From Magallana gigas (taxonomy: Eukaryota): a stretch of DNA of 64,000 nucleotides. The position numbers were made by a program, and so were the translations under genes. The stretch covers positions 42,532,001 to 42,596,000 of the forward strand of contig NC_088857.1 in NCBI RefSeq assembly GCF_963853765.1, given 5' to 3'. Under the pieces are notes generated by a model, which was given only the letters and a program-made list of their open reading frames with translations, searched no databases and was not told the DNA's origin. Shown piece by piece: positions 24,673-33,100 of the stretch (position 1 is the first letter of the stretch; every line of letters begins with the position of its first letter).

Positions 24673-27600
24673 CTAGTCCTCTTTATTGTAGTGGTTGGAC
24701 TCGGCATACAGTGTGTCATAAATGTCATGATGCAGTGTTCCACGGGCCCAGTCCAGAAGTATTGAGTTCACGCCGAAGTTGACGTCTTTGTACCTACAAG
24801 TCAATAGTGTCAGCATTATACCATTGATGTAGGGGATAGTTTAGTATGTTTATTACGAATGGGATGAGTATAATTGACTGCCTTACTTTCTATGGTTCTG
24901 TTGAAATGAACTATCACTCGAGTGAAACATTAGGTCATTATACATGGTGACCATAGTCAGGAACAAGTAAACCCCTTGAAATAAAAATGTTAGAAGTTCA
25001 ATATATAACGGATGGACTGTTAGTTTGATAACAAACTTACTGTTGCAGAGACGGTACGAAAGAGCAAAACGGTGATTTATGATATCAATAATCTGTTATG
25101 AAAAATGAAAGACAATTTATTGGTAAAACTCGTTTGTTTTGTTATAAGAACTTGATATTGAATTTAGTTTTTATTACTATATAAAACCAAAACGTTTATC
25201 CGATTTTTCTCCATGACAATTGCTGAAAAACTGTTGTTACCTATGTGTGTAGGAAACATGTACATAGGTAGTAGACTCTGCAACAACATCGCCACACACT
25301 CCACTGGGTGCATCACCATTAAACTCCACGTGGTCTCCTTGGGCCGATGGCGCCAGAAGTGGATATTTTTATACAGCATTGGCGAATGAAAAGTACGATG
25401 GCGATAGTATGAGGAGACTTCGTAATACAAAAATAGCGCGGGAACTGACACGGCAAAATACAACCAACCCCAATCTGACACATCATTATAGAGGCGGGAA
25501 TAACCTGGAATACAGGGAAATGAAGAATACTTAACTTAGGCTTTAGATTTTTTACATGTTCATCGATGTCCTTTATCACTTTAAAATTTTTATTAGAGCC
25601 ACTAAGTACATAGTGCTATTCTGTTTCATCTTTCAATACCAATTTCTTTTTAGGGAGGAGCTTAAGTTTATACTTAGCTCAGACATGGTCAATATTTTCA
25701 ATAATTATACAAATCTGTGATTTCTGTCGAAAGTTTGTGTATAATAGTTACAATGTAGCATGAATAAACCGCGGGCCTGTGGTTCATAACTGTGACAACG
25801 AAATTTTCAAAAAATTGGTATTTTATACAAACAAGAAATGTTTATAAGCAAAAACACTTATAACATTTTTCTTAGGAAAAAGGATCAAATAAGCTCGAGG
25901 AAGCTCAAATAAGAAGGATATTTCGTAACGTGTGTAAAGGTGTATAATCACATAAGTTCAAACACAAACCATTGCAAATTTTAGTTGACATTTAGTAAAT
26001 GTATCTCAATACCTTTATTTGATGTGAACCAGGCCAGTAGAGCAGAAACAATGGACATCACTGCGACATTAAAGGAACTGAACATTGCGTCATTGAAGAG
26101 TGAAGAATCTTCCTCGATGTCACCATATCCCTTCAACAAATATAAAGTATTGTACATGCAACTTAAAAATTACTACTATACAGTGAAAATAATATATGGA
26201 ATGTTTTATGTCATATCATATCATACAAGTATTCGTGGTAGATGAATGTGAAACAGAAACTTATGTTCTTATTCGTTCCACTCAACAGAACATAAATTAT
26301 TTACAATAATAACAAAACACATGATTAGTGAAGGAAGCGCTTATTTTGCTGCATTTATTTACACGTACAAATACATATAAAGATTCTTCAAACTTCTTTC
26401 TGAAATAAAACATTTTACATAGTGCACAGTCCTTGATTTTTAAATGTCACTAAAAAAGTGGGTGGGTGGGGATTGTGCAAATGCGACAAAGAAAGGATTT
26501 CGAATGAGTGAAAATCGTGCTTAACTTGAATACATGTTCTACAGGTTATATGCTATAAATAGTAGCCAATGGCTACAGGTTTAAATATATATAACCAAAA
26601 CATATAACATGTGTTCTAGTACCTATGATAAATTAATCAAACGTGGACTACCTTTTTCCGCTTTGCACTCCCGAAGAGCCAGTACCAGACTCCAGCTATG
26701 ACATTGTACGATGTTACAGAAAGTATGACCGAATAAAATAGAAACTTGGGCAAGCTCTGGACTCTCTTAAACTCCGGCCATTGTATGGAGGGTAACCAGT
26801 CATCGAGGACCGGTATCTGTGAGGTGATGTTGTTTTTGTTTTGGAAATACCTGATGACGTCAAGGATCCATTCTCCTACATTGAAAGTATATTAGAACCA
26901 TTTTAACAAGAGCTTGGACTTTGGATAGTTGTGTCAAACAGTAATGTGATGCAGGCCTGTCTATTTCATTGCTGGCCACTCAGCCACGACTATCTGAAAT
27001 CAACAAGATTTGTCTGGCTTTTGAGCTAAGACTACGCAATCGGTGCTTATTTCGCTTGAAACTGCGTCAATTTTAACTTGTTTTGACGCAAGAAATAGAC
27101 AGCTACATCCAACCGAAAGTCCAAGGTCTTGTTATAATGGTTCTAATATTACAGCATCATACTATAATCGTTACAGTATTTAAGACTATGAAATAGAGAA
27201 TGATAATTAAAAAGCTGGATACAATGAAAACATCATAACGCTTGTCTTCTAAAAGACTTCAAACAGAAACCATTAATTGGTCTGCTACATGTATGTTGGG
27301 TTTTTCCTGCATATAGATTTTTGCCAGCTTGCTTCACTTTTGGATAGTCCCGTAGCTCCTTCCCATTCTTTTCATCATTTAAACTAAAACCCAGAATAAA
27401 AAGAAACCCAGAGCAAATTCTCAGCATGTGTCTAGGCTATCTGTTCGGTTTTTATTCAGCGTTGTGTTCATTCCAGTCTCGATCGATTTGCATGTTCCGT
27501 CAATTATTTATTCACTCTCGGGCCGCAACGACCCATATTGACGATCTGTTTATTACCCCAATCCATGAATACATGCAAATACAATTCGCACAAACTTACA

Positions 27601-28458: not shown

Positions 28459-28526
28459 TGTATTCTCTTTTGAGAAGTGGACAGGCATAGCCTACTATGC
28501 CTGTCCACTTCTCAAAAGAGAATACA
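28459..28526. repeat. Perfect 32-bp inverted repeat with a 4-nt loop
   Basis: tgtattctcttttgagaagtggacaggcatag-ccta-ctatgcctgtccacttctcaaaagagaataca. Confidence 0.9.
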
Positions 28527-29220
28527 GGAATTGATGAATGTTCTTGATATACTTACAGTGTATTTTATTAGGAACGTAGACAAAGAACAAATACTTAAAA
28601 TTCTGAAATTAATCATTTTATTGACAACAAATGTTTGAAAAACAAAATTTAACAAAATTCCATATAATGTAAACCATTGATTTGGCGCTGACTAGTGTTA
28701 AGACTACATAAATCTCTACTTAATCAAAATTAAAATTGAAGCTCAGAATAACTCAGAAAGAAAGTACTTTAAAATTATCTATTAAAATAGACATAAGCAT
28801 AAAAGCGACTACACATCAAGCGCTAGGTATCAGGTTCCTTAGCACCGTCATATGCGTAGAGGGGAAAAAATATTTGTCAATTAAATAGCGACACATAACA
28901 ATTCTATTTAAATTTATGTATACATACAAATACCCCATATCCACATACACTCTACTCGGGGGAATTAATTTTGAATGGTCGTGCTGTGGGAAAAAAATCC
29001 TATTATGATTTTGATTTAGTTGAACTTTAAATTTAAATTCCACAAATAGAGCTAAACTTTTTCAAACTACAAATTCAATGTACATGTATTGAATTTAACA
29101 ATCTATCTTGTGTTTTAAAAAAAATAGATATCTTTGTTGGAGTTTTAACAATATAATATCGGTCGGTCAAAATACTCTGACCTCTGATTGGGGGTGGGGG
29201 TGGGTGTCCTTCATAACCAT

Positions 29221-29519
29221 AACTCTCATCAAGCAATACATCTGAGATAGTACTGTATTAGCTGTCATTTGATGTTTTGGTGACTATGATTGGGGTAGGG
29301 AATAAGAGGGGTGGGTTGATGCTAGAATCCCTTAACCTCATCCTTGGCACCCGTCAAGCAATACAAATGGGATGTCGTTGTATTCGCTGTCATTTGGGCG
29401 CGGGAGAGGACTGGGATGTGTCCATGTAAATATATTGTGTAAATACTGCCAATACGGACCACTCCATATACCCATCAAGTAATGCGATCGTATAAATCGT
29501 ATTAACTGTCATATGGGTA
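29221..29519 (-). ncRNA. Three tandem structured-RNA hairpins with kink-turn / SECIS-core-like motif (putative cis-element or small RNA cluster)
   Basis: Copies at about 29221-29276, 29347-29401 and 29469-29519 (spacing 125 and 121 nt). On the minus strand each reads stem-[AAU/UAU]-GAC-stem-loop-stem-UGA-stem, with compensatory changes. No expression evidence is available. Confidence 0.5.
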
Positions 29520-30147
29520 CGTGGACAGAGATCTTAGCGTAAAATAAAAAAAAAACCCATAACTACAACGAAAATAAGTTACTAGCACAGTTAACAAAAT
29601 ACAACTACAGTCAGTGAAAACAAATAAATATCAGCACTCTCCTGTGGCTGGTCACGACTGAGTATCAGTGAAATCTGTGTCACAGATTACACGTCATAGT
29701 GGATTATCAATACCTGACCAGCCCAGATCGGGCCCTCACACAGACTCTGTTCTTTGGTGTGTACCTGGTTACGTGTTAATGTTCATACCAACATCACAAT
29801 CACACACAGTTACACGCACACAGTACGTGCCAATCTTATATACAAACAGAAAATATTTATCTCTTTTAAAATAACAGTTTGATGTCCTTGCATTTCAATC
29901 AAGTTGAAATAGACTTAAATAATATTTCTGACCCCCCCCCAAAAAAAAAATATCCCCATTTATCTCTAAATTCCTATATATAAACATTCTCTTACGTTCT
30001 TGAAGTACCCTTGAAAAGTTACATTGATAAAAAGTATTCATTAATATTTCAACAGAACATTATCTTCACAATTAACCATTTTCACAAACAACAGAATCTT
30101 ATGGTCATACAGTGGCACCAACAGGAAGACTGCTTTGTTCTAAATGA

Positions 30148-33100
30148 CTATTCCGATTTCTGGCTTTGTTTTCCTCGTCCCCCAAAAACCTCTTCCCCAT
30201 ATACTCTGCTCTCTTTCCTCAGAGTATCATGGAACCAGTCAAAAAAGTACGTGTTGAATCCAAAATTGACGTGAAAATGTCTGGTAAACAAAGAAAAAAT
30301 AAATATAATTCCAATGCCTGTTTTGTAAGTCATATAAAATCATGACTGTTTACTAGTATTATTGATTTTATTCATTATGGTTCTTACTTGTGGTGGTTGT
30401 CATGGAAATAGGAATGCGGTTGCCATGGCCAGATGGCGCCCATCTTGATTCCGGAATGGTCGCAGAGTCCGTAGTAGTAGGAGTAAAGCAACACAAACAG
30501 GAAGGGGACTGGAAAAAGGACAAGGTCACCGATATAGCCCATTGAAACCCCATCCTTTTATATAATTTTACAGATGTGATATAAGCAATTTCCAAAAAAA
30601 ATAATTAAACATGACAACGTTACTCGTATTATTTTTTCTCTTCCTTCTATATTCAAGATGATAAAACATCATTGTGACTTCGCCATGACTAATGCTGAAA
30701 TATGGTTTGGAAACTTTTCTTCGAGACGTATACTGCTCTTTTCATTTTAACTTACAGGCATGGATTGGAACAAGGAAGGGCGTGGCCGCCAGATACCCTT
30801 GGTACATGATAAATTCCAGAGGATGCATTGCCACTGCGCTCCAGGCCGTGGGCTGGTGGTACCGGTGGTGCATTTTGTGGATCTTTTTATACAGCCAAGG
30901 GTTGTGGAACAGACGGTGAAGGTAGTAGGCCATTGTCTCGTTATAAACAAAGAACGCCACTAGAGAGAAAAGGAAGTATGCCCAGCCTCGCTCTGGTACA
31001 CTGTAGTACATTTTAGAATGCCCTGAAGTTCAAAGAAGAAACCATGGTGAAACCAATCGAGACCCTACCTACTGAGAGATTTAAAAATGCATTCAAATTA
31101 AAAAACAATAATTGCATAATTTAAATGAAAAATTTGCAGTTCTATAAAACACTGTTGATGATGTTGAATGCATGTAAACTATTGTACCGCCGTTCATGAT
31201 GTAACAGGCAATGACCCCAGAAGCCGTTGACCCTATTAACATGTTCATGGAGCCAAGGAGAATCTCGTGTCTTTCGTTCTCGGGGGTCAAGAACTTGTCC
31301 GGCTGACACTTCCACTCCTTGGCCTGTACAGGAAAACAATAAGTCGACTATGTTACAACACAGCACACCATTCGAACATATGTAACAGAAATTCTTTATA
31401 TTCAAGCACTCTATCTTTTTATCGTTTATAAATATGATTATTACTGTATTTTCAAAGAAATGAATTTTATGGGTTTTTCTGTTTTTGTTTGTTGTTTGTT
31501 GTTTTTTGTTTCACTAGTTTCACATTGTTATGCGTGAAGGAAATGTAATTCATGCTAAAGTTTTACTCATGGACAGCTACAATGTCTAGAATCTCACAAT
31601 GTTTACCTCAGTGCCAAATTTAGTTTGAGATACCAAAAGCTAACCATAACATATAAAACTATGTAAATAATGTTCCTACATTTAAGTAGCGCAATAAGTC
31701 CTCACGTCCACGTGAAAAGACCCCCGATATAACAATATAGCATTCCGCTATGATGGGTACATCCTGAGGTATCGTAAGTGTAAATTTAGTACAGATGCAT
31801 GCTAGATATTGTCTTGTATGGAGTTTTAGGAACGATTACATATCGACTGATAATATGGAGAGATCTGTATATTTTGCTACAGATAAAAGTAACCAAGGAA
31901 TCGATAGTTACCCAAAGGTGCTATTAGACCTTAGATATTAGAACATACAATTCCTAGACATAAATCGATTTCCTACCTGCCCGACTGTTAGAAAAAGAAG
32001 GATTTCTTGTAAAACTGCAAAACATGTTCATAAAAACAATTTCTCTAATATAACAAAAAAGAATGATGATTTATACAGCCATGTGAGTATCTGCTAACAG
32101 AAATCTAGTGCAGACCTTAGGATCATAACCAAGGGTGTGTAACTAATTTATTTAAATAAATGCTTAATTACCAAGTGCCTGCGGTTGACATAGTAGTAAT
32201 AGTGCCACCCATACGCCATGCCATAGTACATAATGAAAGACGTGGACACGGCCATCAGAACGAACCAGTGCACGTTCTGGAGGTGGTGGGATTCCAGCAG
32301 GAATTGGGGAGGGTGGGTGGTGCCATTGTCAGCGCTCACAGTAGGCACCTGCTCATCCAGTCCTAAGCCCGTTATTTGTTGAAGCTGGTCCCTGAACATG
32401 TATACTATCACCAGGAGCCATTCTCCTACAATAGTGTCACAGATGATTAATGTGTTCGTTTCATTCTATAAATAGATGATATTCAAAGTAAAATCTTGAT
32501 AATAAGCTGCTTTGATAACACAACCCACAGCTCTGGAAAATTAAAAAAAAAGCTCCTTAGGTTTTACAAAGACGCTATAGTTTCTAACTGAACATATTTA
32601 GGAAAGAACCTCTATTCAAGGCGTTTCTAAAATTATAACAAAATAGAGCGTAAAAATAGAGATTTTCATTTCTATTTCCATCCATATTAAACGAACAACC
32701 ATAGTATCTATTCTGTCAGGTAATCCATCTATTGTGCAATTTATTGCATCTATGAATCATCTATAAATTGTTCTATTGTTGAAAAGGCCGGTCTACTCAA
32801 TATTTAGTAATAAAAAGGTATATGAATGTTCTATATGGTTTGTAATATTACAAAACATCATCTTGCATGAAATAAAGAATATGCCATTGTCAAAAACTAC
32901 CAGTAAAATGATTTGAAGCAATGTTCAAGCCTGGAAAAGGGCTCTCCATTGGTGGAGGCAGGATGGGTTCTAAGCTATATTACATCGATTAAAATATATG
33001 AGAAAAAAAACAATCTTCAAGTCAGGGAGACATGCTAAAGAAAGCGCATTGAATTCGAATCTTTATTAAATTCATTGTCTCCCTCTTGCTCAACAAATAT

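Follow-up and report, generated by a model that had tools for sequence, protein, structure and literature searches.

The window analysed here is a 64,000-nt stretch of the Magallana gigas genome (GCF_963853765.1, NC_088857.1, 42,532,001-42,596,000, forward strand), whose minus strand carries a gene of the fatty-acid-hydroxylase superfamily followed 3′ by an array of similar hairpins (Table 1). The exons of this gene that were read are uninterrupted open reading frames (ORFs), one of which scores as Pfam FA_hydroxylase (exon 30745-31011, E 9.5e-15), and relatives of the gene are named sterol desaturase/sphingolipid hydroxylase in a public source. The last coding exon was located within a mechanical ORF whose first ~17 codons are probably intron. 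Two paralogues were found: a tandem neighbour at ~25245-25490 on the minus strand (41% identity over an 89-aa exon) and a third gene on another chromosome (G000:C2:9201775-9202005, plus strand; 38% identity over an 89-aa exon). The hairpin array is absent 3′ of both.

An earlier reading of this DNA (the original prediction) had placed a hairpin array 630-930 nt downstream of the desaturase stop on the sense strand and had seen no AATAAA in between. Measured from the TAG stop, the array as then described lies 626-930 nt 3′ on the minus strand, and this strand contains neither AATAAA nor ATTAAA between 30354 and 28622, bearing out both statements. Between the stop and hairpin 1, the minus strand also has no ORF of 50 aa or longer. 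The first two AATAAA hexamers lie beyond the last hairpin, and the downstream paralogue has its first exon farther on.

Table 1. Positions of the features of the hairpin locus within the window
Feature	Position	Strand	Remarks
Last coding exon of the fatty-acid-hydroxylase (sterol-desaturase-like) gene, within mechanical ORF	30148..30333	-	TAG stop 30150-30148
Hairpin 1 (copy 3 of the original prediction)	29464..29522	-	65-72 bits
Hairpin 2 (copy 2 of the original prediction)	29343..29403	-	69-76 bits
Hairpin 3 (copy 1 of the original prediction)	29218..29277	-	68-73 bits
Hairpin 4, newly found, much diverged	28806..28861	-	19.5 bits, E 0.003
First two AATAAA hexamers after the stop	28622-28617 and 28569-28564	-	start 184 and 237 nt after hairpin 4

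Hairpins of the 3′ flank

Three minus-strand units about 123 nt apart had been described, and they are present with their letters exactly as quoted and with motif starts 121 and 125 nt apart. Hairpin 1 is closed by the helix UACCCA/UGGGUA, followed by the bulge UAU, G-A and C, an upper helix of 11 pairs including one A.C, a 7-nt loop and then U-G-A. The closing helix of hairpin 2, GCGCCC/GGGUGC, includes a G.U pair and leads to the bulge AAU, with A.C at the bulge-adjacent pair, while hairpin 3 has a short closing helix (UCA/UGA) that is lengthened by AAC/GUU, the bulge AAU and a loop of 13 nt. All three fold as had been predicted, and in 106-nt folds they extend to long imperfect hairpins with arms of 35-40 nt. 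The units had been thought to have only the hairpin in common, with loops and spacers diverging. Divergence is indeed strong outside the arms and core (64-71% identical in arms and core, 10-50% in loops, 18-33% in spacers), but the spacers are still weakly alike and have a short motif (D3) in common. The three units are therefore a diverged tandem triplication.

The array had also been called triple, which is correct for these units but not for the total number. A covariance model built from hairpins 1-3 alone (R1) detected a fourth copy, which the model had not seen, at the score given in Table 1. The closing helix of hairpin 4 (CUACGCA/UGUGUAG) differs from those of the other copies, whereas the bulge UAU, G-A, C and the 3′ U-G-A are all present. 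Its upper helix has a wholly different sequence that still pairs (GGUGCUA../..UAGCGCU, with G.U pairs). In the fold of the minus strand (-18.1 kcal/mol, z -2.3), its arms are ~20 nt long and its flanks unpaired; the plus strand has no comparable fold (z +0.2).

The region is transcribed, as judged from strandless assembled contigs: 85-92% of sampled words from 28900-29900 occur in 14 transcriptome-sized assemblies (30-176 million letters) from at least seven studies, two of the assemblies being on record as RNA-Seq. The same interval also occurs in genome-sized assemblies. Based on this presence in transcriptomes, the position of the first AATAAA past hairpin 4 and the lack of AATAAA or ATTAAA in the 896 nt 3′ of the stop in a related species (see below), the simplest model is a ~1.55-kb 3′UTR that carries all four hairpins and probably ends at the first two AATAAA hexamers. 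As had been proposed, the array follows the desaturase-like gene on its sense strand. It comes ahead of the first canonical poly(A) signal and is most likely part of the 3′UTR of this one fatty-acid-hydroxylase-superfamily gene.

Conservation, covariation and strand

Conservation of the stem at the orthologous site had been named as a test of the original prediction. In one related species, four Logan contigs carry the last-exon ORF (80% protein identity; 80.6% identity of exon DNA) and, ~740 nt after its TAA stop, two copies of the hairpin 114 nt apart, the second of which is interrupted by the ends of the contigs. R1, built without them, detected the two hairpins (24.5 bits, E 1e-4). Co-linear alignment between the two species is limited to the coding exon and the hairpin (71% identity over 55 nt), and the remaining 3′ flank is unalignable, so the hairpin is an island of conservation. 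The relative's two copies (L035:934-1098) are nearly identical to each other and very different from the four in the window; the arrays have therefore expanded or been homogenised independently in each lineage.

Six copies were compared, namely the four in the window and the two in the related species. In the six-row model alignment, 89.3% of cells are in standard pairs, compared with 75.5% in shuffles (none of 500 reaches the observed value), and eight of the 18 pairs change on both sides (equalled in 2 of 500 shuffles); these figures lean towards structure, as related sequences were aligned by fitting them to the model. When partners were slid by 1-3 columns, pairing fell to 19-42%. Helix 1 is 89.7% paired and three of its pairs change on both sides. 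The compensatory changes originally named in the lower stem (C-G to U-A, A-U to G-C and U-A to C-G) can all be seen in the per-pair tables, and the proposed covariation is thereby upheld. In hairpin 4 and in the relative's copies, most letters of the stems are different and yet the pairing is kept; the cross-species part of this covariation comes from a single related species with two nearly identical copies. Selection thus keeps both helices through compensating changes and leaves the unpaired core unchanged.

The pairing favours the sense strand of the gene, as does the minus-strand fold of hairpin 4. Nine G.U cells, which read C.A on the other strand, pair only in sense, compared with four A.C cells that would pair only in antisense. 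The two copies in the relative differ from each other at the first pair of the upper helix, where an A-to-G change turns A-U into G.U. Very probably, the hairpins are a selected RNA structure of the sense strand.

The original prediction had also considered that the unit might be an abundant neutral repeat or part of a transposable element. A BLAST search of the array against the genome matched only the array itself, and the full hairpin pattern had three matches in the 564-Mb genome, all at this locus, with none for a reversed control pattern. A broader covariance model (R2) recovered only the four copies among the 150 scored of ~167,000 first-look candidates. The relaxed core pattern gave 53 matches, compared with 25 for its control, and the 27 off-locus loci that were rescored reached 14.4 bits at most. 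By these searches the unit is not an abundant repeat, although diverged copies may exist elsewhere. A perfect palindrome with arms of ~31 bp, located between the AATAAA signals, which it closely follows, and the downstream paralogue (28467-28533), served as a positive control for repeat detection. At least 80 copies of it, with 83-97% identity, were found among 606 first-look candidates and on all ten chromosome-sized contigs (C1-C10), and it is a dispersed miniature palindromic (MITE-like) repeat.

Kink-turn features and competing explanations

The layout is the same in all six copies: a closing helix of 6-8 pairs, an N-A-U bulge (AAU in four copies, UAU in two), G-A, C, a helix of 9-11 pairs, a variable loop, Y-G-A and the second strand of the closing helix. 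The 5′ G-A and the 3′ Y-G-A are invariant. At 3b.3n, an invariant C (3b) faces U in four copies and another C in two, and positions 4 and 5 of helix II are purine-pyrimidine pairs (A-U or G.U at 4, an invariant G-C at 5). The bulge is closed by A-U in five of the six copies and by A.C in hairpin 2.

Recognition by Snu13p/15.5K depends on a pair-closed 3-nt bulge with A or G at its second position and U at its third, followed by tandem G.A/A.G pairs and a non-Watson-Crick pair, and for SBP2 purine-pyrimidine pairs at positions 4 and 5 of helix II are an additional determinant (PMC1874613). A C at 3b confers ion-induced folding of the kink-turn (PMC6298567). Judged by their letters, the hairpins have these sequence features, including the N-A-U bulge closed by a pair, G-A/G-A and a non-Watson-Crick 3b.3n pair, and the stem, 3-nt bulge and tandem GA/GA that had been put forward as a kink-turn are present at sequence level in all six copies. 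Every invariant letter of the element is accounted for by the kink-turn rules as read here, and we prefer a kink-turn to an unspecified internal loop for this reason. The weak points of the putative fit concern the bulge-adjacent pair, which is A.C in hairpin 2 and, in the other copies, an A-U that is unstudied for folding.

In the mechanism that we propose, each hairpin would fold into a kink-turn and each kink-turn would recruit a protein of the L7Ae/L30 family, either of the SNU13/15.5K type or the SECIS-binding SBP2/SBP2L. With four such sites, this one mRNA would carry a multivalent platform controlling its translation, stability or localisation, in a role other than selenocysteine recoding. 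We tentatively put it slightly below an even chance that the hairpins are a 3′UTR kink-turn platform on which an L7Ae/L30-family protein acts on this mRNA. We know of no natural kink-turn array that regulates a non-selenoprotein animal mRNA, and the prior for such an array is therefore low. The more specific proposal, in which true kink-turns load an L7Ae/L30-family protein, possibly SNU13 or the invertebrate SBP2/SBP2L, onto the sterol-desaturase-like mRNA and would form the first natural array of this kind in a non-selenoprotein animal mRNA, is somewhat unlikely.

The evidence for a selected structure with an unpaired core would fit equally well with a 3′UTR element whose internal loop is not a kink-turn and which serves another RNA-binding protein, an RNA partner, or a stability or processing signal. 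Minimum-energy folds do pair part of the core, and in hairpins 3 and 4 they join the U of the bulge to the A of U-G-A. Such an element would owe its position-by-position match between invariant letters and kink-turn determinants to coincidence, and we consider it unlikely.

No hairpin is matched by an Rfam family, either at the gathering threshold or at E 10, in line with the original statement that the array is not a described element. Eight weak rows (E 1-9) were listed at E 10, none of which falls over a hairpin or belongs to a SECIS or mir family; three are snoRNA families (E 1.2-9) outside the hairpins. Hammerhead and other small ribozymes, the iron-responsive element (IRE) and Roquin or Smaug loops were rejected by eye, as their conserved cores or loops are absent. 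A literature search for the arm sequences returned primers and unrelated matches only, and keyword searches of a paper collection returned no description of a natural tandem array of kink-turns behind an animal gene that does not encode a selenoprotein.

Box C/D RNAs owe their stability to a terminal stem combined with a kink-turn, and tandem hairpins 114-125 nt apart with divergent loops, three of them with extended arms, resemble a polycistronic cluster from which C/D-like small RNPs or miRNA-like RNAs might be processed. Several observations make such precursors quite improbable. The boxes, AUGACRG and UYGA, are unlike the RUGAUGA/CUGA of box C/D snoRNAs, and the interior is a closed 35-40-nt hairpin rather than a guide with C′/D′ boxes, so a box C/D snoRNA was rejected. 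A miRNA cluster, our first guess, was rejected because conservation is confined to ~10 nt of the internal loop and includes no 22-nt arm or seed, the candidate 5p and 3p seeds differ among copies, and the arms of hairpin 4 are too short at ~20 nt, with unpaired flanks. No snoRNA or mir family matches the hairpins, and the spacers, too, are present in the transcriptome assemblies. The miRNA reading had been prompted by the long imperfect hairpins of the 106-nt folds and by UAUUGCUUGA, which the 3′ arm has in common with miR-137.

A neutral, decaying tandem duplication or an element acting at the DNA level, with its pairing a remnant of an ancestral inverted repeat, would agree with the triplication of hairpins 1-3 at 123-nt intervals and their weakly similar spacers, and related sequences may exceed shuffles without any structure. 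We hold this to be highly improbable: two-sided changes preserve the pairing and the slid controls collapse, pairing persists in hairpin 4 and in the relative's copies although nearly all of their stem letters are new, the hairpin is the sole alignable island in a saturated flank, and the use of G.U is asymmetric between the strands.

The original label had joined the kink-turn to a SECIS-like element, and the second half of this label is not supported. The AUGA (5′) and GA (3′) of a SECIS core are present and invariant in all copies of the 3′ flank, selenoprotein P sets a precedent for multiple SECIS elements, and in hairpins 2 and 4 the apical loop could present AA at its 5′ end, 10-11 nt downstream of AUGA. 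However, AAR/CC is absent from hairpins 1 and 3 and from both of the relative's copies, a closed 3-nt bulge takes the place of the SECIS internal loop, and SECIS models had no match at E values up to 10 (111-1001-nt searches). Upstream, no in-frame UGA was found in the exons that were read, the gene ending in TAG (TAA in the relative) with no minus-strand ORF of 50 aa or longer before hairpin 1. A non-canonical SECIS serving selenocysteine insertion in a nearby reading frame is thus a very remote prospect. The genome has a SECIS of its own (G000:C2:56415651-56415717; L078:1501-1567), which matches RF00031/SECIS_1 with 37.9 bits, above the gathering score, and reads AUGA, 12 nt, AAA, GA.

Relation to known systems and distribution

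Few RNA-protein modules are as well understood as the kink-turn, which has found wide use in synthetic switches of translation. To our knowledge, SECIS elements are essentially the only natural kink-turns in animal mRNAs. The motif type that we propose is a known one, while a natural tandem array of it behind an animal gene that encodes no selenoprotein is absent from Rfam and probably so far undescribed.

The closest structural parallels to the candidate kink-turns are the 5′ stem-loop of U4 snRNA and box C/D RNAs, which bind 15.5K/SNU13. These have the same pair-closed 3-nt bulge, whose second and third letters are A and U, tandem G.A/A.G pairs and a non-Watson-Crick pair. The bulge of the U4 kink-turn is AAU, as in four copies here, and a hairpin loop caps the non-canonical helix in U4 and in the array alike. 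In contrast, the array consists of four tandem copies in an mRNA flank, its 3b.3n pair is C.U or C.C instead of U.U, and its non-canonical helix has 9-11 pairs, compared with two in U4. Unlike box C/D RNAs, it has no consensus boxes, guide or Rfam match.

Eukaryotic SECIS elements, bound by SBP2 and eL30, resemble the array in their 3′UTR location and AUGA...GA core, and in that several may occur per mRNA, as in selenoprotein P. The purine-pyrimidine pairs at positions 4 and 5 of helix II, which SBP2 prefers, are a further likeness (PMC1874613). The array differs in having no conserved AAR/CC, in its closed 3-nt bulge where SECIS elements have a large internal loop, in a gene without an in-frame UGA and in being unmatched by SECIS covariance models.

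Kink-turn hairpins that bind an L7Ae/L30-family protein occur in the 5′ leader of archaeal L7Ae and in the pre-mRNA and mRNA of yeast L30 (PMC5539422, PMC6298567, PMC3706390). These operators parallel the candidate kink-turns of the array as hairpins inside an mRNA. They are single-copy, autoregulatory and situated in the 5′ region of the protein's own gene, whereas the array comprises four copies and lies 3′ of an unrelated gene for a lipid enzyme. In comparison with the archaeal switches, the C at 3b in the array predicts folding that would be independent of protein.

Another system with several similar hairpins per 3′UTR, whose stems are free to vary, is the transferrin-receptor mRNA, which carries five IREs that each bind protein. 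The hallmarks of an IRE are its CAGUGN loop and bulged C, while in the array the loops are not conserved and the internal loop is the conserved part. A further likeness is that the host gene of the array encodes a di-iron enzyme family.

If the kink-turn reading is true, the array would represent a new class of cis-regulatory element, a four-copy kink-turn-type array in a non-selenoprotein 3′UTR, and a new kind of client for the L7Ae/L30 family (SNU13, SBP2/SBP2L, eL30 and eL8). A lipid or sterol enzyme might then be coupled to the selenium or RNP-assembly machinery. Even without a kink-turn, the hairpins would be a structured RNA family of recent origin, enlarged by tandem duplication and maintained by selection in at least two species.

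As far as we could see, the array is restricted to this lineage. Further protein searches and exon look-ups yielded no additional 3′ flank, and a metagenome pattern scan gave chance matches only (up to 21 bits, no hairpin). In more distant homologues on mussel-like metagenome contigs, no convincing copy was found 0.2-1.7 kb after the stop. One such contig, from a hydrothermal-vent metagenome, carries an AT-rich tandem repeat with a unit of ~57 nt, which begins ~1.65 kb past the homologous stop (L043:2480-2597), and ends in the second unit. The repeat unit holds a kink-turn-like core, GAAUUC-AAU-GAC...UUGA-GAGUUC, scores 10.4 bits with R2 and has a weak fold (z -1.2); the resemblance could reflect distant kinship with the array or chance.
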